Shown here: in pieces, positions 3,820 through 63,529 of the stretch
How positions within the stretch are numbered: position 1 is the stretch's first letter
How the letters are laid out: each line of letters opens with the position of its first letter
Assembly: GCA_964247055.1 (NCBI GenBank)
Contig: OZ176057.1
Location: 2,852,001 to 2,916,000 of the forward strand
Length of the DNA: 64,000 nt
Direction: 5' to 3'
Origin: Paragordius varius
Taxonomy: Eukaryota; Animalia; Nematomorpha
Notes under the pieces: generated by a model
Told to the model about the DNA's origin: nothing
Databases searched by the model: none
Seen by the model: only the letters and a program-made list of their open reading frames with translations
Made by a program: the position numbers and the translations under genes

Positions 3820-3865
3820 ATGATTTTGATAGCCTTATTCCTAGCCCTTAGTAGATTCGTTTCAA
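3820..3865 (+). CDS. Gene 1 exon 1: signal-peptide-like MILIALFLALSRFVS, phase-1 donor
   Basis: ATG ATT TTG ATA GCC ... GTT TCA A|gtttat. Hydrophobic core, followed by an 83-nt intron. Same ATG ATT start and GTT TCA R|gttt end as gene 3 exon 1. Confidence 0.75.
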
Positions 3866-3948
3866 GTTTATCTTCTTAATTTTTTATAAATTAACGAATT
3901 TATAAACATTTTGTTGAGTAACCCTATATCAATTTTTTTAATACATAG

Positions 3949-3975
3949 AAGCCGAAGGGTATGCGGTAGCTCCAG
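3949..3975 (+). CDS. Gene 1 microexon (27 nt): (K)AEGYAVAP
   Basis: tttttaatacatag|AAGCC...CTCCAG|gtaaaa. GC island, symmetric phase 1, open frame. Confidence 0.8.
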
Positions 3976-4171
3976 GTAAAATATATATTATCTGCCGTTT
4001 TATTAGTTAAGATATTGGTGATTATTTTTTAATTTAAAAAAAATTAAATTTGATTTATAAATGGATTCTATTAACCATATTAATTATTGATTTAATAAGA
4101 CTAACTAAGGGGGCAAGTTGTTAATTTAAAAAAACATTCATATCTGTTTTCAAATTCAATAGAGTAAGTCG

Positions 4172-4173
<2 letters not shown>

Positions 4174-4225
<52 letters not shown>
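4174..4225. repeat. (TA)n microsatellite (others at ~4301-4328, 18938-18968, 37652-37713)
   Basis: Direct reading; these explain the YIYIYI ORFs in the track. Confidence 0.95.
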
Positions 4226-4228
<3 letters not shown>

Positions 4229-4298
4229 GAAAAAGGGTCAAAATTATAAAAATCTTATATTGATTATTTTTTGGAGATTTAAAACAAAAATAATTTTG

Positions 4299-4333
<35 letters not shown>

Positions 4334-4849
4334 AGCAAAGTAATTTTCAAAATTTTGTAAAGAAACGCTCCGGTTTTATGAATTGGATGAAAAATAAAGC
4401 GGGGGGGCCAATTTTTTTAAATTAATGTTTAATATAAAAATAGTTTTTCGTATACATTTTTGCACTAAATTTTGCGATATTTTTTTAAAGAATTTATAGC
4501 AGATCCCAAAACAGCTAAATTTGTTAAGTTGCAATTATCGAAAAACTTAAACAGGCACTTATATTTCTTCACGTATCTAGTTTATAAAAAAATAGATATG
4601 TTTTTTAAACAGATTTTATTTAGAACCGTGTAATTATCGTGAAAAGTATTAGCTTTTTTTTCAATTTTTTACAATCATTTAACATTTTTTAAATACTAAT
4701 ATAGTGATTGGATTTGGCAATTTATTTTATTTTGAGTTCATCTAAAACCATTCTCTACCTAACCCCTAGTTAAATATTATTAGATACTTAGAAAGCTAAA
4801 AGTTTTATCTACAACTTAAACCAACGATTATTATTTATTATATTTTTAG

Positions 4850-4897
4850 GATGCTGGCCTGTGTGTGTGCCAGCTCAGCCCCCTACTGTCAAGCCAG
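4850..4897 (+). CDS. Gene 1 exon (48 nt): (G)CWPVCVPAQPPTVKP
   Basis: tatttttag|GATGC...AAGCCAG|gttatt. Symmetric phase 1, C-x3-C plus Pro-rich tail. Confidence 0.85.
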
Positions 4898-4981
4898 GTT
4901 ATTACTTTTACAATTTTATAGTGCTTTCTTATGGCAAATATATATATTTTAAATTAAAAAAAAAATTTATCAGGATTCTAG

Positions 4982-5203
4982 GGTGCTTTTATTTTCGGTG
5001 CCTGCGAGAGCCTTTAATAAAGTATTCCAAACTATTCGAAAAAAATCATATGTGAATCAAGAGCCAACATATGTTAAATTAAACGGCAATTAGAAATAAA
5101 GTATAAAGTTCTTAAAATTAACTTGTTACCAGCAAAAATCGTGGTCTAATACCTAAATTGCGAAAAAACGCATGCTTCAAATGTAAAATATGTTTACAAT
5201 CAT
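4982..5203 (+). CDS. Candidate exon pair 4982-5021 (GCFYFRCLREPLI) and 5133-5203 (KNRGLIPKLRKNACFKCKICLQS), jointly frame-preserving
   Basis: 40 nt (phase 1 to 2) plus 71 nt (phase 2 to 1) = 111 nt. Donors gtattc and gtatga, Cys-rich. Alternative boundaries exist. Confidence 0.35.
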
Positions 5204-7682
5204 GTATGACATATAAGCAGTTTATCATTTAAAAATATTTAATTTTAATTATTAATTAAATAACCCTTAAAAGACAGTGTAAAACCTTTACTTGGTATTA
5301 ACTAATTTTAGTAGAGTCCTAAAGTTTTTTCTAATATAATGAATCCCAAATTATAAAACACAGAATAACTTAATTATGACTTCAAAAACTTTTTTATATA
5401 ATATTAATTTACGTTTAGCCCCAAAAACTATATTTTTATTAATATTTTTTTTAAGGGATAAAAACTATGATCCCAAAAAATATTTGAAAAACAGCCACAT
5501 GATATAAAATTTTCAACTTTCCAGGTTTTGGCAAAGATTTATATATAATTGGGTTAAAAAATAATTATATTCTATTTGCCTACTTAATATTTTAACTATA
5601 CAATTATATTTATCCATATGTTTTTATGCGATCGGACGAATTTTCTGGAAATACGGCCCGCGCAGCCCACCCCTGATTAGGCATATAATATAGCATATTT
5701 TTTTCAAAGTTTTTATGTAATTTACAATTAAAAGCACCAGAGAACGTTTTTATATGCCTGTGTCAGATTTAATTACATCACACAATTAATAATGTGTTAT
5801 CTTTTTAATTCTTAACTATTAATTGAAAAATTTATTAATTGGAGAAAACAAATCGTGTTAATTTGCGTCTATACGAACGTATCATATTATATTTTAATTT
5901 AATCAAAAGGAAACAATGACATTTCATAATACTACCTTAGAAATGTTATGTATATATACACTGTGTGCATTTAACTTCAATTTTTTTTATAAGATAGCTT
6001 ATGACCAGTGAATTTTGCCGCCAAAATTAATATTAGTTGGCAATTTATTTTTGGAGTAATAAGAGAAAATAGAAATTGGGCAGGAAGTAAAGAAGATTAA
6101 TTAAGGGTAATTAAAAATATGATAAGACTTGAGAAATAATGATTTATTATCATTTTAGCAGATATTTACAATATATAAATAACCTAAATTCACATATTTA
6201 GGGTTTTTTAAAAAATTCAAATCTAATCTATTAACCTACGTAAAAGACAAAAAAATTTTAGGAAATCATATTTTGTTTAATTATTTACAAGCCATCATTA
6301 TTAAAACCATATTCATATTTTATTCAGTAAAAAAACTTGTAATTTTCTATAAAAATTTTTTAATGAAAACTTAATGCATCATTCTAAAATTATTATTAAT
6401 GTATCACATACCATATTATGAAAAGGACATGACAAAGCATTAAAATTTTGGTCCCTTTAAAAATAGGCTGGTTTTCTTAAAATAAACGCAAAAATCCCGA
6501 GAATTAAAGAACTTCCGATATATATAGTTTCCAAAAAACAACTACCTGGTTCGAAAAAACGATAGTAATTTGCATTGATCTGCAAAACAGTTAAAACTTC
6601 ATTTTTGAATTCAAATAGACGCCGTAGCATATTCCCCTTAGACTTAATAATTTATTAAATAAATTAACTAGTACTATTAAATAATATGTTTATTAACATA
6701 AATTTAAGATCACATCTAATCGTTCGCGCCCCCTCCCAACCCCTAAAATTTTTTTGGTTTCCCTTTTGAAAAACCAGTGTTCTTGCACATCATATTTAAA
6801 ATTATTATCGTATTTCCTTTGTGATGTGATAGAATGGGAAATTTATCGGAGCTCAGAATTTATGTTAATATTTAATAAAATTATTTTAATATGGTTAATA
6901 ATTTAAAAATTTTCTAATATTTTATCAAAAAGATGATTAAAATATCCTCAGAAGCAATCCTTTATTTATTATATAAAAAGATGGCGTTTTCCGCCTTCTC
7001 ATAAAAGATTTGTTATTTTTTATTCAAATCTTACACCAAAGTCCAAATTATTAGGACTTTCTGAAAAGAATGTAAAACTCCTTTGATTTTAGTATAATCT
7101 TATGATACATTTTAACAAATAAAATTTAGTAGACACCGTTTCAACAATTACATTTTTGGATATTGTTTACGCTGAAGTGTGATTGTATTACTATATATGG
7201 AATAATTCAGCAAAAATTATATAAATTTATTATGATATAATATTTCTATTACTACAAGTAATCTTTTCTTATTAACAATACACACATGTTTTTTTAGTTT
7301 CATATCTCATTAAATATTTTTTACTTTAAAATTTAAATTTTAGTTTATATTTAATTTTATTTTTACGTTTGACAAAGATTACTTGTAGTAATCGAAATAT
7401 TATATTATAATAAATTTATATAATTTTTGCTGAATTATTCCATATATAATAATTACATTTTTATTAAAGATAAATGTACGATAAAAAGGGCATTTTTGAT
7501 TTTACTAATACTAAAATGATTTAAACTTTTTAAGCATTTAAACGGCATTTATAATTTCTATATCGAATGTTATACGATTCGATAATATCTGTTTGGCGCC
7601 TACCGTGCAATAAAAAATGTTACACAGACACAACTATAAACTATATTAGTTACAAAAATATATGATAATATATTAAATTTAG

Positions 7683-7760
7683 CATGTCCGAATTCTAGAT
7701 GCAACAGCCAATGCTCTATTAAAGTCCTTATAGATGAATGTGAACAATGTGTTTGTCCCG
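7683..7760 (+). CDS. Gene 1 exon (78 nt): antistasin-like 6-Cys module, copy 1, CPNSRCNSQCSIKVLIDECEQCVCP
   Basis: aaatttag|CATGT...TGTCCCG|gtaaat. Spacing C-x4-C-x3-C-x8-C-x2-C-x-C resembles the antistasin-type pattern (central loop usually ~10). Confidence 0.9.
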
Positions 7761-8379
7761 GTAAATTTATTATTTTTTGGCAAGATGCCATTTATATTGT
7801 AAAATTTTAATTAAGATATTTGATCTGTAGATAATTCATTTTATATGGAAATTTATTTAACCGCATTTTTGATTTATTTATAATTTTATATGAACTGTTT
7901 TTAGATAAATTTCAGTATATTTTATATTTAATCTCTCAAGATACGGGCATGTTTAGAAAAATAATGCATGCTTGCTTATTACCAACGGTGCTTTATAAGC
8001 TAAAAATATATATACGGTCTTTACTCCGCGTCATAGTTTATGATGTATTTTGTCTATTGCCTTTTTTACATGGGTAAACAAACTATTTTAAACTAAATAC
8101 AGTTAGGAAAATAAAAATTAGATATGAGACTAGATTATGTAAATTTAATCCATAATTAAAAAAAATAATGTAAGATAGGGAAAAAGGGGTTTAGTTTCAA
8201 GCATTTGTTGTTTTTTACCTATATGCTACTGTATTACCAATCTGGCAACATTAATATGGATCTAGCAATCGTAAATCCCGGGAGGCATTTTTTACCAAAA
8301 AAAATTATTTACCATTCATTAAATTATTTGGTAAATATAAATGAATTCTGGGCATTTACTTATCAAACTGTCGTTCCCT

Positions 8380-8830
8380 ACTATTGTTGATGCTAAGGTC
8401 GATTCCGACTAACTGCATTGTAAATATATCTTCTCCACTCAAGTCAATCAGATTCGTTTCAATGTACATTTTACACCCATATAGTAATGTGGGGAATACT
8501 ATGGCCTATTAATCTGATTTTGGTTTTTAAATCATGGGATCAAATCTGTCTGTGTTTCGTTTGGTTTTTGAGGTAGATTGTTGTCATTATTTATAATACT
8601 AGCCAAATAGGTGTAGCTGTATACGGTTTCAATCGGATTTTCGTTGAGAATTATTGAGTTGATTGTCTGAGCCGGATTGATTTGTATTACTATTGTTTTT
8701 TGTTTTAAGGTTAATTTTTAATCCGTATTTATTGCACTCGATTGTAATTATGAATTTGCGATAAGATATCGATACTGTTAACGAAAAGCTGTGTCATCAA
8801 TAAACTGAGGTGAGAAACTCACCTTCTAGA
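8380..8830 (-). mobile_element. Decayed LINE RT C-terminal fragment (copy ~12245-12690)
   Basis: Minus-strand ECNKYGLKINLKTK...NENPIETV...PTLLYGC, typical of the non-LTR RT 3' region. Confidence 0.7.
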
Positions 8831-9434
8831 ATGATGTCAGAATTTTTTGGTAAAATTTTTACTATGATCCGAGATAGGCGTTTATAATAATTAGGACCTA
8901 TTATATTATTCTTTTTTAAAAAAAAATGAAAAAAAAGGCGACAAAAAAGTATGATATGAATTTTTTTTCAATTTTACATAATTTAAATAATATTTTTTGT
9001 ATTATGCGCCTAAAAGACTAAAGAAAGCATATTTTTAAATTATGCCTAATATTTTAAATTTTAAACTACCCCAAAAGCTGATGATTGAATTAAATATGAA
9101 AAAACATTGAAAAACAATATTTTATTTATAAATCAATGTTGTAATTATACAATTTATAGTAAAAATTAATTTAGGATTAAAGTATGTTGTCTTTAAAAAA
9201 ATTTTGCTTTGTCTGTATAACTACTAATTTTATTAGATGTTTGAAATATTTCAACAATTATGTTCACTATGTAATCTTCTAACAGTTTAAGACAAACTTA
9301 CAATAATGACAACATTCTACATTAATAATATAATATTAAAATATTATTTTGCCTGACAACCTGAGTTGTTTAGGATCAAATGATGTACAGTAATGCTACC
9401 TATTAGTCCATTTATATATTTTAGTTGTCTAAGG

Positions 9435-9679
9435 CAGGGGTGCGAAACAAATGGCTTGCATTTTCGGAAATAAATCTTGCGGACCGCATGGCATTTACAA
9501 TATCTTATTAAAATTTAAACACAACTCTTTAAAAACTACTATTTATTTTAACATTTTTTGCTAGTTCATTGCCGAATTCGGGAAAAATAACAGAAAATTT
9601 GTTATAAAAATAATTTTAGATTTGAATATCATAAAATTTTATATTTTAAATTTCTTGTGCTGAAGGTTGGCCACCCCTG
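9435..9679. mobile_element. hAT-type MITE (copy 13290-13536)
   Basis: TIR CAGGGGTG/CACCCCTG with near-perfect 8-bp TSD gtctaagg/gtctaaag. Confidence 0.85.
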
Positions 9680-9783
9680 GTCTAAAGGATAATTAAATTT
9701 ACATGTCTGTTGGCATGTATGAGATACTTTACAATATACATTCTAAAATTTTTGTTATTAAAATGCTATTTCATTGCAGACAG

Positions 9784-9795
9784 ACGGCCACACTA
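9784..9795 (+). CDS. Candidate microexon (D)GHT (copy at 13641-13652)
   Basis: ttgcagacag|ACGGCCACACTA|gtagtt. GC island, but the upstream AG (9778-79) would give xRRPH-stop, so boundaries are ambiguous. Confidence 0.3.
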
Positions 9796-10101
9796 GTAGT
9801 TTTAGCATAGAATTTAGCATATTAACATGTGATAGTTAAAAATAATATAAAATGCAAAATCTTGCAAAACAATGAATAAAAATTAAACAAAGTAAGCAAA
9901 ACGGTCTTTATTAAAAAAAGTTTGTCTCTATGTTTTGTATTATCCCTTTTAATTCAAAGACAACTAAACTACTGAAATGGCTACATTATTAACTCTTTCG
10001 TTATATACTTTAACAGCAAATTTGATTTGATTTTATTCCATATGTATTTTATAAAGGGAAATCTTTTATATAAAACAATATTCTTTTATACATGTTACCA
10101 G

Positions 10102-10131
10102 CTCAACCAATGCCACCACCACAACCACCAG
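10102..10131 (+). CDS. Gene 1 Pro-rich microexon (30 nt), copy 1: (A)QPMPPPQPP
   Basis: catgttaccag|CTCAA...CCACCAG|gttttt. Symmetric; all three frames are open, and phase 1 is chosen from neighbouring exons. Confidence 0.8.
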
Positions 10132-10238
10132 GTTTTTATTTAGTTACTTTTTGTTTTTTATAAAAAAAGCACTGTAGTAAAGTATGAGTAAGTATAAATT
10201 TCTAGTTTTTTTAATTATTTCTAGAATCATATATACAG

Positions 10239-10247
10239 ATAGTGTTG
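10239..10247 (+). CDS. Candidate 9-nt microexon (D)SV (copies 14098-14106, 16048-16056)
   Basis: atatacag|ATAGTGTTG|gtgtac. A competing donor 2 nt downstream (gtacgt/gtatgt) gives 11 nt. Identical in three copies while the adjacent sequence has an indel. Confidence 0.45.
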
Positions 10248-10325
10248 GTGTACGTTAATATTATTTAAAATAAATAAAAGTGTATACTGTTTATAAATTT
10301 TTATTACACCTATTCAAACATTTAG

Positions 10326-10343
10326 TAGTATCTAAGACTCGGA
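10326..10343 (+). CDS. Candidate 18-nt microexon (V)VSKTR with NAGNAG acceptor (copies 14185-14202, 16132-16149: VVSKAR)
   Basis: catttag|TAG TATCTAAGACTCGGA|gtaaaa. Both acceptors keep frame; 78-nt upstream intron; one synonymous CGG/CGA difference among copies. Confidence 0.45.
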
Positions 10344-10641
10344 GTAAAAAGATATTTTTAAATTGCAAATAAATCAACCTTTATAATTTAATTAAGTTAC
10401 TTTAATAATATCCTCTTTTTTGTACATTTAGTAAAATAATCAGTAATGTATAGAGTTTTGCAATTATCTTTTACTGCCTTGATACGCCTGAGCTATTTAA
10501 TCAGGAAAAGTAAATTTTGGGACAAATTTTATATGAAGTTTTAGCTATGTAATTAGATGTTTGACGTAAAATATAAACATCTCAAGCTTTTCTATATCAA
10601 TTTTTTCTTTGGTTTTAAAATGTAAATAGGCTAATAAATGG

Positions 10642-11010
10642 TATACCATTTACAGTTCAAATTCACCCTTGAACAATTCAAATTCACCCTTGAACAATTC
10701 AAATTCACCCTTGAACAATTCAAATTCACCCTTGAACAATTCAAATTCACCCTAAAAATAAATTATGAAACTTCGGTCTAATATAACTCATCATAAAAAT
10801 TATATATTTTTATGGCAAAGTTTATTATTTTTTCAGTATTATTTTGATTACATACAAAAATTTTTTTATAAATATAAAAAATATAGGTAATATATAATCT
10901 TAAAAAACACATAATTTATTTTAGGGTGAATTTGAATTGTTTGAAGGTGAATTTGAATTGTTCAAGGAATTTAAATTGTTCAAGGGTGAATTTGAACTGT
11001 AAATGGTATA
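10642..11010. mobile_element. Foldback/MITE with 21-bp subterminal arrays (copies 14509-14845, ~16450-16690, ~37990-38260)
   Basis: TIR TATACCATTTACAGTTCAAATTCACCC with tandem TTCAAATTCACCCTTGAACAA units. Confidence 0.8.
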
Positions 11011-11529
11011 TTAAGAATTAATAAATAGTTTATTATAAAAAGGTTAATTATATTTAAGCAGCAAATTTGGATATTTATTGATTAAGCTTATTCAATTTTG
11101 GATTATAGAACTTATAATCTTTAAAAGATTGATACCCTTTTTATCTAATACAGATTAATGTCTCACTAAATATTTTTTACTTTAAAATTTAAATTTTAGT
11201 TTATATTTAATTTATTTTTACGTTTGACAAAGATTACTTGTAGTAATCGAAATATTATATTATAATAAATTTATATAATTTTTGCTGAATTATTCCATAT
11301 ATAATAATTACATTTTTATTAAAGATAAATGTACGATAAAAAGGGCATTTTTGATTTTACTAATAATAAAATGATTTAAACTTTTTTAGCATTTTAACGG
11401 CATTCTATATCGAATGTTATACGATTCAATAATATCTGTTTGGCGCGTACCGTGCAATAAAAAATGTTACACAGACACAACTATAAACTATATTAGTTAC
11501 AAAAATATATGATAATATATTAAATTTAG

Positions 11530-11607
11530 TATGTCCAAAACCTAGATGCAACAGCCAATGCTCTGTTAAAGTCATTGTAAGGGGATGTGTACATTGTGTT
11601 TGTCCCG
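11530..11607 (+). CDS. Gene 1 exon (78 nt): antistasin-like module, copy 2, CPKPRCNSQCSVKVIVRGCVHCVCP
   Basis: aaatttag|TATGT...TGTCCCG|gtaaat. All six Cys are kept relative to copy 1, with 13 nt differences. Confidence 0.9.
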
Positions 11608-13964
11608 GTAAATTTATTATTTTTTGGCAAGATGCCATTTATATTGTAAAATTTTAATTAAGATATTTGATCTGTAGATAATTCATTTTATATGGAAATT
11701 TATTTAACCGCATTTTTGATTTATTTATTATTTTATATGAACTGTTTTTAGATAAATTTCAGTATATTTTATATTTAATCTCTCAAGATACGGGCATGTT
11801 TAGAAAAATAGTGCATGCTTGCTTATTACCAACGGTGCTTTATAAGCTAAAAATATATGTACGGTCCTTACTCCGCGTCATAGTTTAAAATGTATTTTGT
11901 CTATATTGCCTTTTTTACATGGGTAAACAAACTATTTTAAACTAAATACAGTTAGGAAAATAAAAATCAGATATGAGACTAGATTATGTAAATTTAATCC
12001 ATAATTAAAAAAAATTAATGTAAGATAGGGAAAAAGGGGTTTAGTTTCAAGCATTTGTTGTTTTTTACCTATATGCTACTGTATTACCAATCTGCCAACA
12101 TTAATATGGATCTAGCAATCGTAAATCCCGGGAGGCATTTTTTACCAAAAAAAATTTATTTACCATTCATTTAATTATTTGGTAAATATAAATGGATTTT
12201 GGGCATTTAATTATTTAATCATACTGTAATTCCCTACTATTGTTGTTGTTGCTAAGGTCGATTCCGACTAACTGCATTGTAAATATATCTTCTCCACTCA
12301 AGTCAATCAGATTCGTTTCAATGTACATTTTACACCCATATAGTAATGTGGGGAATACTGTGGCATATTAATCTGATTTTGGTTTTTAAATCATGGGATC
12401 AAATCTGGCTGTGTTTCGTTTGGTTTTTAAGGTAGATTGTTGTCATTATTTATAATATTAGCCAAATAGGTGTAGCTGTCTGTATACGGTTTCAATCGGA
12501 TTTTCGTTGAGAATTATTGAGTTGATTGTCTGAGCCGGATTGATTTGTATTACTATTGTTTTTGTTTTAAGGTTAATTTTTAATCCGTATTTATTGCACT
12601 CGATTGTAATTAAGAATTTGCGATAAGATATCGATACTGTTAACAAAAAGCTGTGTCATCAATAAATGGAGGTGAGAAACTCACCTTCTACAATGATGTC
12701 AGAATTTTTTGGTAAAATTTTTACTATGATCCGAGATAGGCGTTAAAAATATTAGGACCTATTATATTATTCTTTTTTAAAAAAAATGAAAAAAAAGGCG
12801 ACAAAAAAGTTTAATATGAATTTTTTTTTCAATTTTACATAATTTAAATAATATTTTTTGTATTATGCGCCTAGACTAAAGAAAGCATATTTTTAAATTG
12901 TGCCTAATATTTTAAATTTTAAACTACCCCAAAAGCTGATGATTGAATTAAATATGAAAAAACATTAAAAAACAATATTTAATTATATATCAATGTTGTA
13001 ATTATACAAATTATAGTAAAAATTAATTTAGGATTAAAGTATGTTTTCTTTAAAAAAAATTTTGCTTTGTCTGTATAACTACTAAATTTATTAGATGTTT
13101 GAAATATATCAACAATTATGTTCACTATGTAATCTTTTAACAGTTTAAGACATTACAATAATGACAACATTCTACATTAATAATATAATATTAAAATATT
13201 ATTTTGCCTTACAACCTGAGTTGTTTAGGATCAAATGATGTACAGTAATGCTACCTATTAGTCCATTTATATATTTTAGTTGTCTAAGGCAGGGGTGTCC
13301 GAAACAAATGGCTTGCATTTTCGGAAATAAATCTTGCGGACCGCATGGCATTTGCAATATCTTTTTAAAATTTAAACATAACTCTTTAAAAACTACTATT
13401 TATTTTAACATTTTTTGCTAGTTCATTGCCGAATTCGGGAAAAATAACAAAAAATTTGTTATAAAAATAATTTTAGATTTGGATATCATAAAATTTTATA
13501 TTTTAAATTTCTTGTGCTGAAGGTTGGCCACCCCTGGTCTAAAGGATAATTAAATTTACATGTCTGTTGGCATGTATGAGATACTTTACAATATACATTC
13601 TAAAATTTTTGTTATTAAAATGCTATTTCATTGCAGACAGACGGCCACACTAGTAGTTTTAGCATAGAATTTAGCATATTAACATATGATAGTTAAAAAT
13701 AATATAAAATGCAAAATCTTGCAAAACAATGAATAAAAATTAAACAAAGTGAGATAAGCAAAACGGTCTTTATTAAAAAAATGTTTGTCTCTATGTTTTG
13801 TATTATCCCTTTTAATTCAAAGACAACTAAACTACTGAAATGGCTACATTATTAACTCTTTCGTTATATACTTTATCAGCAAATTTGATTTGATTTTATT
13901 CCATATGTATTTTATAAAGGGAAATCTTTTATATAAAACAATATTCTTTTATACATGTTACCAG

Positions 13965-13994
13965 CTCAACCAATGCCACCACCACAACCACCAG
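13965..13994 (+). CDS. Gene 1 Pro-rich microexon, copy 2
   Basis: Identical to 10102-10131 with intact splice sites. Confidence 0.75.
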
Positions 13995-15643
13995 GTTTTT
14001 ATTTAGTTACTTTTTGTTTTTTATAAAAAAAGCACTGTAGTAAAGTATGAGTAAGTATAAATTTCTAGTTTTTTTTAATTATTTCTAGAATATACAGATA
14101 GTGTTGGTGTATGTTAAAATTATTTAAAATAAATAAAGGTGTATACTGTTTATGAATTTTTATTACACCTATTCAAACATTTAGTAGTATCTAAGGCTCG
14201 AAGTAAAAAGATATTTTTAAATTGCAAATAAATCAACCTTTATAATTTAATTACGTTACTTTAATAATATTCTCTTTGTTTGTACATTTAGTAAAATAAT
14301 CAGTAATGTATAGAGTTTTGCAATTATCTTTTACTGCCTTGATACGCCTGAGCTATATAATCAGGAAAAGTAAATTTTGGGACAAATTTTATATGAAGTT
14401 TTAGCTATGTAATTAGATGTTTGACGTAAAATATAAACATTATCTCAAACTTTTCTATAACAATTTTTTCTTTGGAATTATTTAAAATGTAAATAGGCTA
14501 ATAAATGGTATACCATTTACAGTTCAAATTCACCCTTGAACAATTCAAATTCACCCTTGAACAATTCGAATTCACCCTAAAAATTAGTTATGAAACTTCG
14601 GGCTAATATAACTATTTTTATGGAAAAGTTTATTATTTTTTCAGTATTATTTTGATTACATACAAAATTTATTTTTTTATAAATATAAAAAATATAGGTA
14701 ATATATAATCTTAAAAAACACATAATTTATTTTAGGGTCAATTTGAATTGTTCGAAGGTGAATTTGAATTGTTCAAGGGTTAATTTGAATTGTTTAAGGG
14801 TGAATTTGAATTGTTTGAGGGTGAATTTGAACTGTAAATGGTATATTATGAATTAATAAATAATTTAATGTAAAAAGGCTAATTATATTTAAGCAGCAAA
14901 ATTTGGATATTTATTGATTGAGCTTTCTCAATTTTGGATTATAAAACTTAAAATCTTTAAAAGATTGATACCCTTTTTATCTAATACAGATTAATGTTTT
15001 GTTATATTTTAACCAACTTTCAACAGCAGTTTTTATCAACTTAAGTTCTAGGGTTTAAAACTACCCGAAGAGGAGATCTTCCAAAAATATAAATAACCAA
15101 ATCATACAGGGGTTTCTATAAAATCTCAGTTCAAAGAGGGCGTTTTTCTTTCTCGCAAACACAAAAGACAAAATATTTTATGAAACTATATTAAAAAAAA
15201 TTTTTAATTAAAAGAACATATATAAAAATAACTAAAAATATTTATTATTTTTTCATTTTTTTGTTTCTCGGTTTATGTTAATATGAAATTTTATATAAGC
15301 GGAAATTATAAAGTATAATTAAATGAAAATAAAATTTACAAAAAAACCAAAATCCGTCACCAGTAAAAATATTAATATGTGTTAAAACAAACATTTTACA
15401 GGGATTTGTAAAGATTTTTCGTTGATATTCCAGTACTTTTAAATCATATTTTGCACTTATATAATATTTAATTCCCACTCACGTAAGATTCCAAAAGTAT
15501 AAATTTTTTATACACTCAGAAACAAGATAAAAAAAATGACAAAATAAAAAACATATGTTTTATTTTTATTGGATATATAAGTTTTTTTACTGAATAAAAT
15601 TTGTATGTGATTTTGTATATAATTAAAAAAATTATTTTGACAC

Positions 15644-15663
15644 TAGGGTTAGGGTTAGGGTTA
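15644..15663 (+). repeat. Interstitial telomere-like (TTAGGG)3 patch
   Basis: tagggttagggttagggtta, absent from the paralogous position at ~17424. Confidence 0.7.
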
Positions 15664-15915
15664 AGAAACCCCAGACTAAATTTAATTTAGAATTTTTTAA
15701 AAAACTACTGAAAGAAAGGGTCCCAATTTATATTTATGCTTCTATCCTAAATTATATCCCTTTTAATTCAAAGACAACTCAACTACTGAAATGGCAACAT
15801 TATTAACTCTTTCGTTATATACTTTATCAACAAATTAGATTTGATTTTATTCCATATGTATTTTATAAGGGGAAATCTTTTATATAAAACAATATTCTTT
15901 TATACATGTTACCAG

Positions 15916-18933: not shown

Positions 18934-18972
<39 letters not shown>

Positions 18973-52057: not shown

Positions 52058-52286
52058 TATAAATTGGTCTAGGTTAATAACTTGATGTATTCTTATCTAT
52101 CAATCATATATATTGGATAAATCTAAAATTTAAAAAGTATGGTTTTGTAAGAAAATTTGTCCTTATTTTTTACAATTTATTCGTATATAACTTCAGTTAC
52201 TATAGCTTTAACCAAAAAAATTTATTGTAAAAAATATGCGCACATTTCCATTTTCTCATATGGAACATTTAACACAAGTAACTTTC

Positions 52287-52873
52287 TTAACACTTCGATT
52301 CAAATTGGGGTTTCTAAATACCCCAGACAAATTTTAAATTAATATTTTTAAAAAACTACTGAAGGAAACGGTCCCAATTTAAATTTATGGTTGTATCCTA
52401 ATAAAAATTATATAAATATGCAAAAATATCTTGATAAAATTTTGTTTTGAAAAAAAAGCTTCATGTCAAACTACTTCGACGCCATTTTTATTTTACAAAA
52501 TTTTTGCAAAATATCGTCTTCATTTAATTTTAAGGGTAAAATTAAAGGTAATTTTTTATTTAAATTACATCTAACATTGATAGCGAAACAAAAAGCGGTT
52601 TATTTTGTATTATTTATTAATTTTACTATTTCGCACATGTCACGTTGACGAAATTTTTACCTTTAGGTTTTAGCTCTAAATAAGTAATATCAAGTATTTT
52701 TAAAATTTTTTTATATAATTCGGTTTATTAATGTTACATAAGTGCAAAATTTTGCCATGGTTTTGATTCCTTCCATACTTTTTAAAGTATTATATTTTAA
52801 ACAGGCCTGGGGTATTTAACTACCCCAATTTGAATCGAAGGACTAAAATGAGTGTGTTGTATCCAAGTGTTAA
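52287..52873. mobile_element. TTAA-flanked MITE family (other copies ~17421-17976, 47086-47632, ~59860-60403, ~34480-34845 inverted)
   Basis: Termini TTAA-CACTT...AAGTG-TTAA and a shared interior (caaactacttcgacgcc...). Confidence 0.8.
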
Positions 52874-53744
52874 ATGACCATAAGGGCCAAAACAAAATCC
52901 AAAATTATACAATACATTTTTATATCATTTATATGTCATCAGGATATTTTTTGCCAACACTTGGAATATGAAGTAGACTACAAAATTTTGCTAACAAATA
53001 AATAGTTGACAAAGTATGCTTTTTTATGTAATTATAATAAATTTTGATCATATTTTTGAAAAAAAACAACTTCCCAAAAATTTGTGTAATAAAATGTGCT
53101 CAAATTTTGCCATTTTCTGATTAGTAAAAGTCATAATAATTTTTTTATATAACGTATGTCTCCGAATTCAGGATAATTTTTCGTAAATAAATTAACACTA
53201 AACAAAAGTTTTATCAAAACTTGATAGCGCCATCGAAATAAATAGAAAAGGTGCTGATTAGAAGTTTTCCAATTTAACATGCTTTAAATTACTTAAGGCT
53301 TAAACTAATGCTAAATTTTAATTTTTGTAATTAACTTTTTAAAATATTTTTTTATATAAAACACCATATAAATAGATCTAATCGCAAAGATTATACATTG
53401 AGTATAAAAATAAAACTAACCCATTTAAGTGGTGACAGTTGCCCCATGTAAAAATTTATTAAAATTAGCTTTTTGAATATAGTGTATGATATAATTATAT
53501 AATATTTTTACATTATTATGCATTTAGCTTTCACCATATTATTATTTAACATAGCACTTAAGATATTTTTCAATATGGAACAATTACTACAGTGGCTCAA
53601 TTTCTTTTTACTGACTCATGGGCAAAACTAAAAATCATAGGTGAAGCATTTTTTCACAGAAAATACATATAGATTTATAAAAAACTTAAAAGTATTGAAT
53701 TTTAGTTTGACATGCAAACGCGATATATAAATTTTTTGACCTAG

Positions 53745-54601: not shown

Positions 54602-56176
54602 AAGAATTATTCAATTACTTGAATAATATTGAATGATTCCTCAAGACATGTTATGGAGATTATTTTCTTAGCCTACCTTTTTAATAATAAGTCATAGTAC
54701 CTCCTATCATGCAATAGGTGTATGAAACGAAAAGTTAAAATTTATGAGATCGTTTACTCCTTGTTGTGGACTTATCAGTCACATATAAAGAACACGGGTA
54801 AACACTACAGTTAAGATTTTGTATATATACTGAGTATTTAAGTTTTTAAGATGACCCTTTGGGTGTTCCCTGTTTTAAGACCAACATTTGGTAAAAACTT
54901 TAATACTAAGTATACATATAAAAAACCCTAACTGAAAGTGTTTCGTGTTTATTATGTCTGACTGATTACAACAAGGCGAAACGCGTCTCACACTATGACA
55001 TGTGGTAAACACTGTCCTCTGTAAATTTTTGTTTTATAAAACCGCCTATTGCTTGATAGGAGGTCCTATAACATCCAATTGCAAAGGTAGACTAAGTAAA
55101 TAATCTCCATAACATGTTTTATACCTTTGTAGATGACGAAAAGAATTACAGTAAATACCAATAAACCTAGGTACCATAGCCGCGTGTATAAGTGAACAAA
55201 TATAACCAGATCAAAAAATGCTTTTACAATTTAAAATTTGGGAGCCATATTTTGAGATATGTACAACATAGGATTAGGTAGATTACATCAAAAATATTAT
55301 CATGAAATAATTTTAAATATTGAATGAAAAAAGGGTTGTGGTATAAACACCAAGCTGAGATGAGTATTAAACATAGAAAAAACCCATGGAACGCTTACGC
55401 TTTGTTACCAGTTGGAACCCAAAAGTAATTTTTCGAAATTGTGCTTATTTTATATAATCTTCTTCATTTATTGTCGATTAATTTTTTGTAAAATTAATAA
55501 TGTAATGTTCTATATGTTAATTTCTTTAGCAATTACCTCTCTAGAAATATATATATATATATGAATTCTAGATATAAATAATATTTCACACGTTTGCTAA
55601 AAATATGTTAACAATAGTACGCCATAGAGATGCATTACGTCTTACAATTGACTTAGGGTTGTAAATATCTGAGTGATTTAAGTGTTTTACTAAAAAAATA
55701 TATCACCTTTTAAATTTATTCATGTAAACAAGATATATATTAAATGAAAATTTTCTTAAATAGCTTGAGACACGCTAAGTGTGAGGTCCAAAAATAACAT
55801 GTATCTAAACTATTTAAATATTTGCTTCAAGATGTTTAAGAAGTAACCCAATTTATATATATAACTTAGAAAAAATGTCATGTTTTGGACATCGTTTTAT
55901 ATGCTAAAAATTACGAAAAATTTATAATAAAATAAAAAACTCAAAAATAAGAAACAAGAATAGTAATAAAATGGTAATAAAAAATGTATGTATGTACCCT
56001 CAAACCAAAAATAAGGATACTATTCGTTCGCAGGTATTTCTTAGCCAAAATAATACCGTATACTTTAAATTTTTATATACACATACAGATATTAACATAT
56101 TTTTGTTAAAAAAAATTTTGTGAAACATATTCCTCCAACTTTAAAATTATCACTATTTACGACAAATAATCCGTTC

Positions 56177-56228
56177 ATGATTAGACTATCCCTTTTACTG
56201 TGCTTTGCAATTATTGGCTGTGTTTCAG
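56177..56228 (+). CDS. Gene 3 exon 1: signal peptide MIRLSLLLCFAIIGCVS
   Basis: ATG ATT AGA ... GTT TCA G|gtttct, followed by a 98-nt intron. Confidence 0.85.
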
Positions 56229-56326
56229 GTTTCTTTTTCCTAATATTTTTATGCGTAAACTATTATGTAGAATAAATTTCTATGATAACATAACTAACAT
56301 TTTTATAATAATTTTTCTAATCAAAG

Positions 56327-56368
56327 GAGATAATGGGAGTGGTAAACCAGTCGATTCACCAAAACCAG
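56327..56368 (+). CDS. Gene 3 exon (42 nt): (G)DNGSGKPVDSPKP
   Basis: ctaac branch motif; tcaaag|GAGAT...AAACCAG|gtttaa. Confidence 0.85.
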
Positions 56369-56446
56369 GTTTAATATAAATCGCAATTAACTATTTTTCA
56401 TCATTTTTTATCATTATTACAATTACAAATTTTTTAAACTTAATAG

Positions 56447-56464
56447 CAATCCCTGAAGGATCAT
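56447..56464 (+). CDS. Gene 3 microexon (18 nt): (A)IPEGS
   Basis: ttaatag|CAATCCCTGAAGGATCAT|gtaagt, a consensus donor. Confidence 0.85.
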
Positions 56465-57463
56465 GTAAGTCTATGAAATTTTTATTTATTCGTGAAACAT
56501 TTTCAACAATTATTAACTCATATTTTAGTAAAATAATTTATATTATTTGTTATCGCCTAGGTAGTCCTTAATTAAACATTTGGTTATTGATTAAACAAAA
56601 CCCTATTAAAACACCTAATCTTTTAGTTTATATAAAAGTAAAGAGCACTTTAATGCTATATATGTTTTTTAATTCATTAATTTGCATGTAATTAGCCATG
56701 GTTAAAATTTTTCGTTTATTTATTACATATTTAATACCTTGATACCGTTTCACTTTTTTTGTCCTAGTCCCAGAGCTTGTTTTATTAAATAAAACAGTTT
56801 TGAAAGTTAATTGAGGTAAAACTTTAATTATAAAACATTGTTCTATGTATTGGATATATAAGGTTAGGTTACAAATTTTACCGCTTTATGACTTCTAGGG
56901 TCGAAAATTGAAACAGCTCCAAAGGATTGTAACGAACAGCTGTATCATATAGAAATATATCAAAAGTTTGCTGGTAAAATAAAACCTGAATACTTTTTAA
57001 AAATAATATCCATTTCAAACCATACATTTATTGGATGTTGTATTAATAAATAAATGATTTTTGGAAAAAAAATGATGGTAAAATGGATTATTTTACAATT
57101 CTATGCGCCTAAAAGACTCAGGAAAGCTGATTTTAAAATTTTAGGATAAAAATAATCGCTCTTGGATGTAAAACAACCCCCAAAAGGTGAGTGTTAACAC
57201 TATTTTTTCCCACACTTTGATATGTATGTAATAAAATAAATAATCAATCATAAACATAGCTACTGACATGTTTAATTACTCTTATGGCCAATAAAAATAC
57301 AGATATAGCCTATAAATTATGTATTGTAAATAGCAAACTGTATAAACCAATGTTAAGTACTCATTAATTGTGTTTTATCTATAATAATTTTAATAAAATA
57401 GTTTTTAACCAATGAGTGAATATTAAAGTATAGTTAGAACAAATATTTTTCCCAAAATTTTAG

Positions 57464-57523
57464 TCGTATGCTATTACCCACAATGCTCGTATCCACAACC
57501 TCCGCCACCAGAAATGCCTACAG
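57464..57523 (+). CDS. Gene 3 exon (60 nt): (F)VCYYPQCSYPQPPPPEMPT
   Basis: aattttag|TCGTA...CCTACAG|gttttt. Paralogous to 18456-18488. Confidence 0.9.
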
Positions 57524-59530
57524 GTTTTTACCCAGTACTTATAAAATTTTTTCACGAGTACAAAAATCTTTATTCAATATATTTTATAACATTCACACTT
57601 TAAAATACGTATTTCCCTTCAATCAAAACTTCAAAACAATCGAACAACTTTTCATTAAGTTTGATTTTATGTTAAACATAACATTATAAGACGCTAGCTA
57701 ATTGGATCTAACTCCAATTTTGTTTTTTGATATATCCCTTAAAAAAAACTTTAACATTTTATATTTAATCCTAAACTTGCGAATTTTCCTATATTTCATG
57801 AAATATAATAATATATAAAATAGTTTGGGTGTTTCCGAGCTAAATTTATTGAGATATCTAGTATTGTTTTTAGCGTGTTTTACCCTTTCTCTATCTTTCC
57901 TCACCCAAATGTGATAGTTTTTTTGAAAAACTGTAATTCTAAATATTTTTTTTTATACAGGCCAAGAGGGGTATAGTATATCAACACCTCTTAAAACAGT
58001 TTGTACTTTAAGCATTAAGGTAGATTGCTACAAAATGTTATCGCTTGCAAAAATGAAAAGGTCATGAAGTGTTAAATAAATTAAACATTCAAACATTTAT
58101 TAAAAACAACCATTTGTTATAAAATCCAAATTTTATGATATTTTATTAATAAAAATGTTAAAACTAGGGTAATGAAATAGTACTGGACGAAATTAATAAT
58201 TTATCTCAGAACCACCCAAATTTTTAAAGTTTGAAAAATTTAGTCAGGTTGACATAAACATTAAATATTGAAATGTTTGACACCCTAATCAAAATGTAAT
58301 AGTAAAAAATATGATTTTAGATTATATTATGAGTAATAAATAACTGTGTTGTTAACAAGATAAATGAAAATGATATTTTAGTATTTTATTTATATCTTGT
58401 AATAATATATATTTTATTGACTAGAAAATTCTTTAATTATTTGAGTTTTGTATTGGGAAATTGATTTGAAAATGGGTTTAATTATTCAGAAAAATGTATT
58501 TAGATTTGGAAATGGATATGTTTAACATACAGAAACCTAAGAAGAAGCGCATGCTTTGCCTTTCAAAGCTCAAATTTAATTATAATTTGTAAATAGTGAA
58601 TTGTAAGGTACTGCTACTATAATCAAATATAATTCCGATCTAATACTTTAACATTGGACAGAAATAGGTTCGCTAATTTATAACAAAAAATTTTAACTTA
58701 TTTTAACAATTGGGCCAAATATATAAATTGGTATTATTTGGTCTTTTTAAGGTGAATTATTGTATTTTTTTAACTTTTTATAAAAAATGTAACTTCTATC
58801 CGCGATTTGTTAGATAATATAAAATAAAAAAGTATACATATATATATAAAGTGTAGATAGTTGTCAACACGCTCCTGAAAGAATAGTAAAAATTCTAGAA
58901 AAGTTAAAATAACTTTTTAATTATCACAAATAGTAAAAGTATCTTAAGAATCTAAATTCATTTTTCCATCACCGTATAGACTAATCCTTTTAAAATAGCC
59001 CTATAAGACTTAGATCATTTTTGTTAAAACAGATATTTTGGTTGAGTCGGATTATGTCAAAATTTTGATGAAGCATATTTTTGTTTTTGAAATTTAATAC
59101 GATTTGGAGTGACGTTTGTTTGTGAGTTATGGTAAACTATTGTTTAAAAGTTTTAAAAGTCATATTGGTATCTCTTTATAGAACAATGCCAGCTTGCAAT
59201 AATTAGACACCAAAATATTTGAGATTTTGTAAAATTAGAGTATAATATATTTTAATAATTTTGGGAATAAAGTTATTATTATCCAAAAAAATTAAACTAT
59301 ACACGAAATTTCGCGACTTTCAATACTCATTAATACAAGATAACTTCAAAATTATTTTATGATATGATTCCTAAGCCGCAAAACTAGCATCATAATCCCT
59401 ATACATATTTAAAATCTATTTCGCTATTTCTGTGTTGTGATGTTAAATGATATTTTTGCAGTGCACTATTCCACAAGATCATACATAATTATTAGTATGG
59501 CATAAAATTTATTATATTTTATATTTGTAG

Positions 59531-59584
59531 GATGTTATCAGGCAGATTGCCAGGGATATCATCAGCCAGCAAGGCCATCGTCAG
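59531..59584 (+). CDS. Gene 3 exon (54 nt): (G)CYQADCQGYHQPARPSS
   Basis: atatttgtag|GATGT...TCGTCAG|gtattc. Symmetric. Confidence 0.88.
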
Positions 59585-61260
59585 GTATTCTACAGTAAAA
59601 AATTATATGTCAAATTTTGGTTAACTAACATCGGTCGGTGAGTTGTTAATTATAAACGGTAAGAATTCTATATTTTTAAATTTAAAATAATATTTAATAA
59701 AAAACATGAAGTGCGTTTACCCTAAAAAGACATTGAATAAGTTAACTCAAACCTTTTTGTTTTCAACCAAACAGTTGTTATTCGCCATACTCCATATATC
59801 TCGAATTATAAGATTAGATGTGTATTATTTTGGGTAAATAAATTTTTACATAATTTATAACCTATTAATTTTTAAGACCTTGACTCAAATTGGGGTATCA
59901 AAGACCCGAGACTATATAAGTTGTATTTTTAAAAACGACAGAAGTAAACTGTTCCAATTTTATGCTTCTATTCTGATAAAAATTATAGAAATAAGCTAGT
60001 CGTATTATAATTTCGCTTTCCAAAAAAAGTTCCATTCACTATCAGACTACTTCGACGGCAATTTTATATCACAACAAGTTTGCAAAATATCTGTGAATTA
60101 GATTCAACGCTAAAATTTAAGCTAATTGTATTACCTATCTATAACATCGTAAAGAAAAAAGTTTTTCAATTGATTTATTTTTATATTTAGCTATTATACA
60201 CATGTCATGTTAACTAAATTTTTACCTTGATATTTATCCATAAAATAAGTTAAAAGATTTTCAAAAGCAATCATTCCTATAATTTGGTGCTTCATTGTAA
60301 TATAATTGCAAACTTTTGATGTCGATTTCCATAAAAAAGATTTTGAACAGGCCTAGGGTCACCACCCAATTCGATTCATGAATGTGCTGTATACAAGTGT
60401 TAAAATTTTTCTGATTGAAAAATGAACCACATAATTAATTTACAGCAGTCATCTGATTTTGAAAACTTGAAATCAAATTTTTGTATAAAAAAAAATAAAA
60501 ATAAACCCTTTCGTTATTACCGATACTAGGAAAATTTTTACAAAGCATTTTGTAGTGGTAAATCTTAATATATGCTAGTCTCAAACTTTTGCCAATTATC
60601 ATGATTATATTAATCAACTGTTTGTTTCGATATAGTTTAATAGTTACTAAAATAGAGACTTTTTATAACTTTCACACATTTACACATAAAAAATAAAAAG
60701 GTATTATATGGGAACATAAAAACAATCCAAAATATATAGTTCCGTTAAAATTTGAAATTTGGGGTATTATAGAATATACATTTATATATACCTGTGTTGT
60801 TTTGGTTACCCCTGACTTTTTAAAATAAATTAGTAGATCTTATACCAAGTTAAAATGTATTTAATATTTAGGATATACTATGATTTATTAATGGTTGCAG
60901 AATTAAAACCTTAACTAATATGCTGTATTTTATAAACAAAAGTTTTACTTATTTAACCATATATGATTATACCAGTTTTGAACAAACCTCTTTAATATTT
61001 AAAAATAATTTTTATAGTGTCAGATCACGTATTTTGGATTTTGTATAATAAATAATATATTCTTACGCTTGGGCTTAATAAGTAATGAATTTTTAATAAA
61101 GTACCGAGTTGTATTTAATTTATCCAAAACTTTATTAAGAGATGAAATGCCTATTTTTTATACATCGATCAAACAATACCATCATTATATTATAAATAAA
61201 GTATATCTGCTTAAACAATTGTTACCTTATTTATATAAGCATTTTTATATTTACTTATAG

Positions 61261-61284
61261 GTTGTCGTCGTAGCGGATGTTCAG
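61261..61284 (+). CDS. Gene 3 microexon (24 nt): (G)CRRSGCS
   Basis: ttacttatag|GTTGT...GTTCAG|gttaat. Symmetric. Confidence 0.85.
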
Positions 61285-61793
61285 GTTAATTATTTATCAT
61301 TGTTTCATAAAAAATTAAATTTAATTGTATAAATCTTTATTTTATTAATAATTTTTAAGGATTGAATTAACCAGATTTTTTCATAAAACTTATATTTTCA
61401 ATAACGCTTAATAGGGAAGGGATGTTAATTGGAAACATTTCACACATAATTTTGATGCAGTAAAAATTGGAATTATACGGACAAAATATAAAAATATAAG
61501 ACAAATATTTTTTCCAAAACACACCCATACTATTTAAATCTTGTTTTTTTTATTAATAAATCATTGTTAATGAATTATAGATATATAATAGTAACACAAT
61601 CAATTATATATTTTACAATTGTAATAAAATAATTTATTTGGCAAAAATTCATGTTTTATGGTTTGTTAATTAAATAAAAATATTTGCTTTGATATTTTTA
61701 CGTTTCCATAGTATAATTTCAATTTTTACTGTAAAAAACATAAAATGAAAACGCTTTTTATTTAAAGGCTTTGTCTAAATAATTTAATCTACA

Positions 61794-63394
61794 CAGGGCT
61801 TCTTAAACTATGGGTCGCGACCCCATTTGGGGTCGTGAGTGATAAAAAATAAATTTGACAAAAAATGTTTTTTAACTTGTAAAATTATTGTTATAAAGAA
61901 AAATAACAATCATCGTATATAAATATATCCTAAAATCTTCTGGTTCGGAAAGACTGTTTATACCAGCATTTCTATATTGATCATCATAATCTATATATTT
62001 ATAAAAATGGAAAATGCTGGCTTTGTGATCTGTTTCCGGAAAACCGGTAGACACATTCAAATCCAAATGTCAAAAAATATTCATTTCCCGACAATAGCTT
62101 CGCCCTTTTTTAAAATTAGGCCCCTTCGGGCCCACCTTGTGTAAAAAACGTTTTTTTGAAAGTCCACAGTCTCTGAGACAATTTTCCGCAAAAGGTGTTG
62201 GTCGATTTCAAATATGATTTTTTTACCTTTTCTCGATTGCCCCGAACATAGTGGGTTTACTTTTTTAATTTAGGCTCTCTTTTTACCCTCTTCCCCCGTA
62301 AAATGCTATTTTTTTCAAAAAAAACTAAATAATTTTTTGTCGGGTATGAGACCGTTATTCAATGAAGATTCCAGGTATTCCCTATTAAAAGACAAAAATT
62401 TTAGCCTTGCGTTTTTTAAATATTGGCTGCTAGGTAAACAGATAGCTGCTAGAACTGCTCTACTATACAGAAATTTCGTTTTTGGAACTAATTTACAGAA
62501 AATTTATAAAGCCATATGAGCTTAAAAGCTTACCGTAACTAGGTAAAAATTAAGGTCGGGCTTATCAGCCGTTAATTTGGGGTCTTTATGCCCCCATCAT
62601 ATAATTATTTACTGTTGAAGTATTTTTTTGAATAACCCATGAGACGATGGTATCAAAGATAATTCCAAATATTTGCCCTATAAAGGCAAAGAATTTAACT
62701 CAGCACTTTTTCCATACTATGGGTAGGGGTTTCCAAAACAGAGACGCCATATAAAATGGCGTAGTTTTGGAGCTAATGTTCAAAAAACTTAAGGAGCCAT
62801 ACGAGTTTAGTTAAACACACTGGATAATTTGTATAATATCATTCTCTCCTTTTAAAAGGGATCACAAATGATTTACTTTTTATAACCCTTGATCCCTTCT
62901 GTGTGAACACAATTTCAAAATAGAACTTTTAACCATGATTTCGTAAAATAAAAATTTAAAATAAATCCAATGATAGTTGAATACTAACTTTAATAGGGAC
63001 AGTTTAAATATGGTCAATTTCGAGTAAACAATATTTGAGCCTATGCAAAAATTCGGAAAAGAATAATTAAAGACATTTGTTATTAAATATATTTTTTATT
63101 ATTTTTTTATCTTTATTAACTCTATATATTACAAATTATTAGGAATAAGCAAAGCGTAACAGGGCCAGCCAGTATCTTGGTTAAATTATTCAGAAAATGT
63201 TATAGAAATTTATAAAAAATGTAGATTTATTTTTGTCAATTTCTTAAAACCGAAATAATCCTGATAAATATTATCAACAATATTTCTAAGTGTTATTGCG
63301 AAGAAACTATTATTTTTTTCATATTTGTTGGGGTCGTGAAAGAAACACGCCATCATAAATGGGGTCGGGAACTACAAAAGTTTAATAAGCCCTG
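61794..63394. mobile_element. hAT non-autonomous element with internal insertions, in the last intron of gene 3
   Basis: TIR CAGGGCTTCTTAAACT / AGTTTAATAAGCCCTG; gggtcgcgacccc subterminal motif; near-TSD atctacac/atctatac. Confidence 0.75.
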
Positions 63395-63446
63395 ATCTAT
63401 ACTGTTTATATAATTAAACATATGCATATATTTTATTGTATATTAG

Positions 63447-63529
63447 GATATTCATGTGACCAACATTGCAACTGTAATAATTTAATCATAATAATATTAG
63501 TTATATTTATAGTAATTAAAACCACATAA
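63447..63529 (+). CDS. Gene 3 terminal exon: (G)YSCDQHCNCNNLIIIILVIFIVIKTT-stop (membrane anchor or GPI-like tail)
   Basis: tgtatattag acceptor; 12 consecutive I/L/V/F before TAA at 63527-63529. An alternative phase-1 donor (gtaata) lies at 63474. Confidence 0.75.

Follow-up and report, generated by a model that had tools for sequence, protein, structure and literature searches.

Two micro-exon genes in an AT-rich stretch of a horsehair worm genome very probably encode small secreted Cys/Pro-rich proteins

The DNA considered here, which we will call the window, is the whole of a 64,000-nt stretch of Paragordius varius contig OZ176057.1 (2,852,001–2,916,000 of the forward strand); all coordinates below are those of the window. 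On its + strand lie two series of very short exons, gene 1 (3820–~18700) and gene 3 (56177–63529). These are very probably real protein-coding genes that open reading frame (ORF) callers miss and, as far as their sequences tell, very probably encode small secreted Cys/Pro-rich proteins. An earlier reading of the letters, to which we will refer as the original prediction, had seen a cluster of micro-exon genes across most of the window; this is convincing for genes 1 and 3 but not for the rest of the islands that it claimed. We consider it likely, although by no means assured, that the two genes are old paralogs belonging to a lineage-specific micro-exon family.

Read from the sequence and followed by script, gene 1 has 10 exons that join in an uninterrupted frame of 180 codons. 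Exon 1 (3820–3865, 46 nt) starts with ATG, encodes the peptide MILIALFLALSRFVS, a putative signal peptide by manual reading, and ends in the phase-1 donor CAA/gtttat (here and below, a slash within a sequence marks a splice junction). It is followed after 83 nt, in the same frame, by exon 2 (3949–3975, 27 nt), which encodes AEGYAVAP, has a GC content of 0.59 (0.89/0.56/0.33 by codon position) and ends in CAG/gtaaaa. Exon 3 (4850–4897, 48 nt; CWPVCVPAQPPTVKP) has a GC content of 0.62 and lies between the splice sites tttttag/ and CAG/gt. Exon 4 (7683–7760, 78 nt) encodes a six-Cys module, CPNSRCNSQCSIKVLIDECEQCVCP, and exon 5 (10102–10131, 30 nt; codon-position GC 0.9/0.7/0.1) encodes a Pro-rich linker, QPMPPPQPP. 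Both of these recur. Exon 6 (11530–11607) is the duplicated six-Cys module, CPKPRCNSQCSVKVIVRGCVHCVCP, within a 3.86-kb tandem duplicate, and the linker exon exists in three identical copies, the second being exon 7 (13965–13994) and the third exon 8 (15916–15945), which lies inside a nested duplication about 1.95 kb long. Exon 9 (18456–18488, 33 nt; alternative acceptor at 18462) encodes VVCYHPGQCS. The last coding exon, if read to TAA, spans 18558–18700 and begins with VPCNPPCCNLIIPLII; coding-like composition is confined to 18558–18581, which could alternatively be a 24-nt micro-exon with the donor T/gtaatt. The introns measure 83, 874, 2785, 2341, 1398, 2357, 1921, 2510, and 69 nt. Some 400 nt 3' of the last exon there is also a 21-nt island on the + strand (18977–18997; PDQHRK) that has good splice sites and coding-like codon-position GC, and that would be in phase if 18558–18581 were spliced at T/gtaatt.

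Gene 3, read in the same manner, has 7 exons and an uninterrupted 110-codon frame, which reproduces the 110-residue model as first described. Exon 1 (56177–56228, 52 nt) starts with ATG, encodes the putative signal peptide MIRLSLLLCFAIIGCVS, and ends in CAG/gtttct. Exon 2 (56327–56368, 42 nt; codon-position GC 0.64/0.57/0.14) encodes DNGSGKPVDSPKP, and exon 3 (56447–56464, 18 nt), with the donor CAT/gtaagt, encodes IPEGS. Exon 3 could perhaps be skipped, in which case the following junction would give the codon GTC (Val), as in gene 1. Exon 4 (57464–57523, 60 nt; VCYYPQCSYPQPPPPEMPT) is paralogous at its start to exon 9 of gene 1, and is followed by exon 5 (59531–59584, 54 nt; CYQADCQGYHQPARPSS) and exon 6 (61261–61284, 24 nt; CRRSGCS; codon-position GC 0.5/1.0/0.12). 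The last exon as read (63447–63529; YSCDQHCNCNNLIIIILVIFIVIKTT) ends in the stop codon TAA; it too has an alternative form, a 27-nt micro-exon (63447–63473) with the donor T/gtaata. The sequence around the tail is 20% GC, and an AATAAA lies at 63590, 61 nt past the stop. Introns of 98, 78, 999, 2007, 1676, and 2162 nt separate these exons. A 9-nt island at 61415–61423, which had been counted earlier, drops out, because its final T, once joined to the last exon, would create a TGA.

The two genes share a common exon design. Their internal exons are all 18–78 nt in length, are multiples of 3, are bounded by ag and gt and are open in phase 1, and to this extent the earlier description of symmetric + strand exons holds (sequence reading and script). 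Exon GC is 0.40–0.43 overall and reaches 0.62 in single exons, against 0.24–0.25 in introns. Introns range from 69 to 2785 nt, and the shortest ones lie toward the gene ends: in gene 1 the first and the last (83 and 69 nt), in gene 3 the two nearest the 5' end (98 and 78 nt). CAG/gt is the donor of 10 of the 15 internal exons (7 of the 12 distinct ones), and the acceptors are ttttag-like. With CAG/gt as the donor, the codon split by the junction begins with G, and whether it specifies Gly, Ala, or Val is fixed by the downstream exon alone. Each module is thereby portable, leaving the frame and its neighbors untouched. The modules come one to an exon and are of three kinds: Cys pairs (CWPVC, CYYPQC, CYQADC, CRRSGC, and CDQHC, in the patterns CxxxC and CxxxxC), a six-Cys unit (spacing C-x4-C-x3-C-x8-C-x2-C-x-C), and Pro-rich linkers (QPMPPPQPP and PQPPPPEMPT). 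In the first exons of both genes, manual reading finds a hydrophobic core and then small residues before the junction. The resemblance between these exons that had been pointed out (ATGATT...GTTTCAR/gttt) is present in both genes as claimed; the nucleotide similarity of the two first exons was not above shuffled controls.

The evidence that these are genes does not come from counting islands. Taking 85 objectively defined GC islands, we asked on each strand which of them contain a symmetric phase-1 open exon between an ag and a gt. This was so for 25 of 85 on the + strand versus 17 of 85 on the control strand (32 versus 22 in a looser scan). Islands of this kind are thus almost as common on the control strand. 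Their counts, like those of leader ORFs and tail ORFs, do not discriminate, and we dropped them as evidence. The original count of more than 25 islands is not borne out for the same reason, and about 17 convincing coding exons are left of it.

Codon-position GC separates the exons from such islands. Across the ten unique internal exons of genes 1 and 3, GC is 0.61/0.60/0.27 at the three codon positions (chi-square p 8e-10), and the third position, which equals intron GC (0.24–0.25), is the lowest in every one of the ten. Equally GC-rich symmetric open islands taken as controls show no periodicity, with values of 0.51/0.46/0.51 on the + strand and 0.50/0.43/0.53 on the - strand. Applied as a filter, codon-position GC returns 38 candidates on the + strand versus 9 on the - strand, the former concentrated in the two gene intervals. 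Keeping positions 1 and 2 at 60% GC against a background of 25% requires that the protein be under selection, either at present or up to a recent time. The test is cheap, needs no RNA, and could serve generally in AT-rich genomes to tell genuine micro-exons apart from islands that arise by chance.

The relationship between the two genes is seen at the protein level. When all exon peptides were compared with the window by tblastn, the sole cross-gene hit was VVCYHPGQCS versus VVCYYP-QCS (E 3e-4). Between VCYHPGQCS and VCYYP-QCS there are five synonymous third-position differences, one replaced codon, and one missing codon; the five synonymous changes are those on which the original prediction had placed weight, and they were reproduced here.

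Gene 1 also records how such a gene can grow. Nested tandem duplications of exon-plus-intron cassettes occupy 7305–17500 on the + strand, with a 3.86-kb unit present twice and then a unit of about 1.9 kb, the copies being 92–99% identical. Within them, the two 78-nt six-Cys exons (7683–7760 versus 11530–11607) differ at 13 of 78 positions, compared with 79 of the remaining 3540 aligned bases, i.e. 2.2% (Fisher p 4.5e-8), and the differences end exactly at ag and gt, the flanks of the two exons being about 98–99% identical. Twelve of the 13 are non-synonymous; they change 10 residues and leave all six Cys in place. For this one recent pair available, dN is 0.207 and dS is 0.082, against an intron divergence of 0.022. 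Thus, in the one pair at hand, the six-Cys loops change fast on a fixed Cys scaffold. We infer that the cause is either selection or patch conversion; patch gene conversion from an unseen paralog is a possible alternative source of exon-confined divergence of this kind. Part of the difference between the exons is itself clustered, GATGAA (7734–7739) in one copy being AGGGGA (11581–11586) in the other, and these four changes in six adjacent bases look like one complex or templated event rather than independent point mutations. The locus is a clean natural example of gene growth by exon-cassette duplication, and of an exon that, with its cysteine scaffold kept, diverges at about nine times the rate of the introns beside it.

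As likely paralogs of a lineage-specific micro-exon family, genes 1 and 3 are organized in the following way. In each, a short first exon codes for the signal-peptide-like start, and the body is a string of phase-1 symmetric exons of 18–78 nt, one module each, spaced by introns of 0.07–2.8 kb. Duplication, loss, or skipping of any one exon would then leave the frame open and the neighboring modules unaltered. The family grows through tandem duplication of exon-plus-intron cassettes; duplication of modules is seen three times in gene 1. The product would be a small secreted protein in which disulfide-stapled mini-loops are set on stiff Pro-rich spacers. It would perhaps be tethered by a short C-terminal hydrophobic segment, and would function extracellularly, as a component of a surface or a matrix. 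Such a component could be variable and host-facing, or it could be an ordinary cross-linked structural one.

Several observations weigh against this reading. First, a number of the donors have a weak intronic part (gtttnn). Second, signal-like first exons arise by chance about 100 times per strand, and hydrophobic last exons about 50 times. Third, the 3' ends of both genes are ambiguous. Fourth, neither spliced product finds a protein at E <= 10 among 5.8 billion proteins, including ORFs from assembled public runs. The reverse transcriptase of a retroelement elsewhere in the window likewise finds at most 47% identity in that collection, so that this genome seems to be absent from it. Finally, three RNA-labeled runs of the same species (19–30 Mb of contigs each) have no RNA contig on 56100–62100 or 13100–19100, and sampled words of 3700–8000 and the last exon of gene 3 are absent from the same three runs. 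A fourth RNA-labeled run (eight records) placed nothing on the genes. The few RNA-run pieces of 20–35 nt that could be placed are low-complexity matches, and the runs that do contain the gene regions are DNA-like. As there are only three small transcriptomes, absence of RNA is no proof of silence, and transcription is neither demonstrated nor refuted.

Other searches speak to the identity of the products. No Pfam family matched either six-Cys exon at E <= 10, and a sequence search of the PDB gave no relevant match, the only hit being a chance one to fibrinogen. Together with the protein search, these results support an orphan Cys/Pro-rich family as the predicted products of genes 1 and 3, and the earlier statement that no named family is recognizable for them stands. 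Separately, a DNA-like run of 2024 with a different organism label contains contigs with 0–1 differences per 200–490 nt from positions 56100–62100 of the window. Both labels therefore cover nearly one genome, and the run gives no divergence for a conservation comparison.

A more far-reaching interpretation can be built on the same exons. Micro-exon genes (MEGs) are regarded as a speciality of parasitic flatworms and are tied to variable products that are secreted at the interface with the host. The locus might represent an independently evolved MEG-like system outside the flatworms, in a horsehair worm, with one Cys-scaffold or Pro-linker module per micro-exon ending in G, recombination of modules by skipping and duplication, loops under diversifying selection, and a variable coat facing the host that would have arisen convergently with the coat of blood flukes. 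We advance this version only tentatively, as possible but rather doubtful. If true, the appearance of the same design with unrelated proteins in the very AT-rich genome of another animal would imply repeated evolution, and standard annotation of such genomes would overlook a class of secreted proteins.

Somewhat less probable, and in our view unlikely, is that the exons are real and their boundaries wrong. There would then be one or two longer genes that run past 18.7 kb and past the window end, the tails would be intron read-through, and the transcripts, spliced constitutively, would encode ordinary extracellular structural proteins of cuticle, eggshell, or matrix rather than a variable system. 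The hydrophobic tails, which had been taken as gene ends and do not hold up well as such, lend themselves to this view. In gene 3 the tail is 12 residues followed by KTT; in gene 1 it is only 7, followed by 30 unrelated residues that make a polar tail. Both are encoded by AT-rich sequence right after a possible donor, T/GTAAT (18581/18582 and 63473/63474). Coding-like composition ends exactly at that donor in both genes, and each "last" exon may for this reason be another symmetric micro-exon. Three features resist the extension into longer genes. The stretch CN(N)LII that follows the possible donor is similar in both genes (E 0.05); an AATAAA lies past the stop of gene 3; and gene 3 has its own ATG and a leader exon like that of gene 1, which makes at least two transcription units. 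As to the nature of the products, a composition of Cys, Pro, Tyr, and Gly suits cross-linked structural proteins, but it is unusual for bulk structural ones to diverge fast and yet keep their Cys, as the six-Cys exon does.

It is quite improbable that the genes are dying or dead, having been coding until recently and then lost their transcription. This would account for the absence of RNA contigs on either gene and for the disordered 3' end of gene 1, whose C-terminal exon is without the hydrophobic run found in gene 3, and the introns do contain many transposon insertions. Against it, both frames stay open through all 17 exons and no splice dinucleotide is lacking, the very recently duplicated exon cassettes are still open, and the GC kept at 0.6 at codon positions 1 and 2 against a background of 0.25 would decay quickly without selection.

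Least tenable of all is the idea that GC-richer patches in AT-rich DNA produced ag/gt-bounded open segments that a reader then chained together; it can point to the 17 of 85 control-strand islands, to the abundance of leader-like ORFs, and to short islands such as 61415–61423 that conflict with the model, but chance yields neither the codon-position periodicity that the controls lack, nor exon-confined divergence, nor protein-level conservation of a module through synonymous changes, and we regard it as very improbable. Chance is thus disfavored for genes 1 and 3, and it is the default explanation for most islands between 19 and 56 kb.

It was in that interval that the original prediction had placed a second gene. 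What can be recovered of gene 2 is four weakly supported exons, with no in-phase start or stop exon between 19 and 56 kb. Two of the candidates, both Gly/Ser-rich and on the + strand, are 31062–31127 (66 nt, LNPFNGMLGGGSGSSNSNLDF) and 33652–33711 (60 nt, LMRSFGVGGSSSSFNHDLN), and the likeness between them is confined to the exon. A second similar pair of candidates lies at 31355–31369 and 35713–35730 (V[AI]R[FM]L). Codon periodicity in these pairs is weak (p 0.3). The tandem cluster of the original description is in this way reduced to two paralogs 37 kb apart, between which there are unrelated Gly/Ser-rich candidate exons.

Outside its two retroelements, the window has a GC content of 0.21–0.29. 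This is strongly AT-rich animal DNA, and the value is compatible with the 26.9% GC reported for Gordionus montsenyensis (10.1101/2023.06.26.546503). The only long ORFs come from those two elements. One is a degenerate long interspersed nuclear element (LINE) of the RTE type on the + strand (24389–27500), its pieces separated by frameshifts, with an endonuclease ORF at 24750–25307 and, at 26311–26994, a reverse transcriptase ORF that ends in a PHD-type zinc finger (both + strand); the best identity of this reverse transcriptase among the 5.8 billion proteins is 47%. The other is a Gypsy-type long terminal repeat (LTR) retrotransposon on the - strand (47300–52900), whose gag, protease, reverse transcriptase, RNase H, and integrase ORFs lie in five pieces (48101–51865) and which is flanked by direct repeats (47306–47636 and 52549–52876) that are just 74–80% alike. 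A search of the ESM Atlas with the retroelement integrase led to arthropod- or cnidarian-like clusters and was not informative as to the host. No tRNA or Rfam family was detected in the 64-kb window. An interspersed repeat family with copies about 65% alike is represented at 17338–17982 and 59796–60409, and also at 47.3 and 52.6 kb; its first two copies, in introns of genes 1 and 3, respectively, are the sole nucleotide BLAST similarity between the two genes. A foldback-type element, made of tandem 21-nt units (TTCAAATTCACCCTTGAACAA) and an inverted arm, occurs at 10640–11000, 14480–14900, and 38000–38240, and the copy in the second duplicated cassette of gene 1 has indels.

We can now compare the two genes with systems already described. 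The spacing of the six-Cys exon resembles the antistasin pattern, CPxxxCxxxC...CxxCxC with one domain per exon (PF02822). The central loop is shorter here, however, and one copy lacks the usual Gly/Asp positions. Antistasin identity for the six-Cys exons is not supported, as there was no match to the Pfam profile at a threshold of E 10 and no relevant match in the PDB search.

Two broader comparisons concern how the exons are built and how they change. Some animal extracellular proteins consist of modules encoded by phase 1-1 exons, which allow exon shuffling. Genes 1 and 3 follow the same logic, in that one module per symmetric phase-1 exon permits duplication and shuffling, although modules of 6–26 residues are far smaller than domains of the EGF or Ig type. 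Conotoxins and snake phospholipase A2 (PLA2) are venom or host-interface families with conserved introns and hypervariable mature-peptide exons. As in these families, the recent exon pair of gene 1 has a conserved Cys framework and replacements that concentrate in the loops, and the introns of the duplicates are much more alike than the exon itself; the comparison here extends to one exon pair, and a venom or gland context is not established.

The closest analogy is to the MEGs, which in full-text searches of the literature came up only for flatworms, with nothing for Nematomorpha. Those of schistosomes have symmetric exons of 6–81 nt, introns of 0.1–5 kb whose length decreases toward the ends of the gene, a signal peptide, and products of fewer than 190 residues, and they are hard to annotate (PMC10526429); flatworm MEGs also evolve at an accelerated rate (PMC4350168). 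Genes 1 and 3 resemble them in several respects. Most of the coding sequence is in short symmetric exons, 18–78 nt here against 6–81 nt there (PMC10526429). The introns are long and become shorter toward the gene ends. The first exon may encode a signal peptide, as manual reading suggests, although ORFs of this sort arise by chance about 100 times on each strand. The products, of about 110–180 residues, have no recognizable domains and escape automatic annotation. Finally, exons change faster than introns, here in one recent exon pair (cf. PMC4350168). There are also differences. There is no sequence similarity, no protein being found at E <= 10; the exons exceed on average the 15-nt mode of MEGs, with 7–10 of them per gene versus 10–20; the products are Cys/Pro-rich with paired Cys; and the host genome is much more AT-rich. 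It should also be borne in mind that the design is read here from sequence, whereas MEGs are defined by transcription, glandular expression, and exon-skipping isoforms. The MEG-like interpretation of the original prediction is accordingly sustained for the architecture; exon evolution is accelerated as well, and no homology to flatworm MEGs was found. Genes 1 and 3, as predicted, have the MEG design, carrying unrelated Cys/Pro-rich proteins, without being members of a MEG family.

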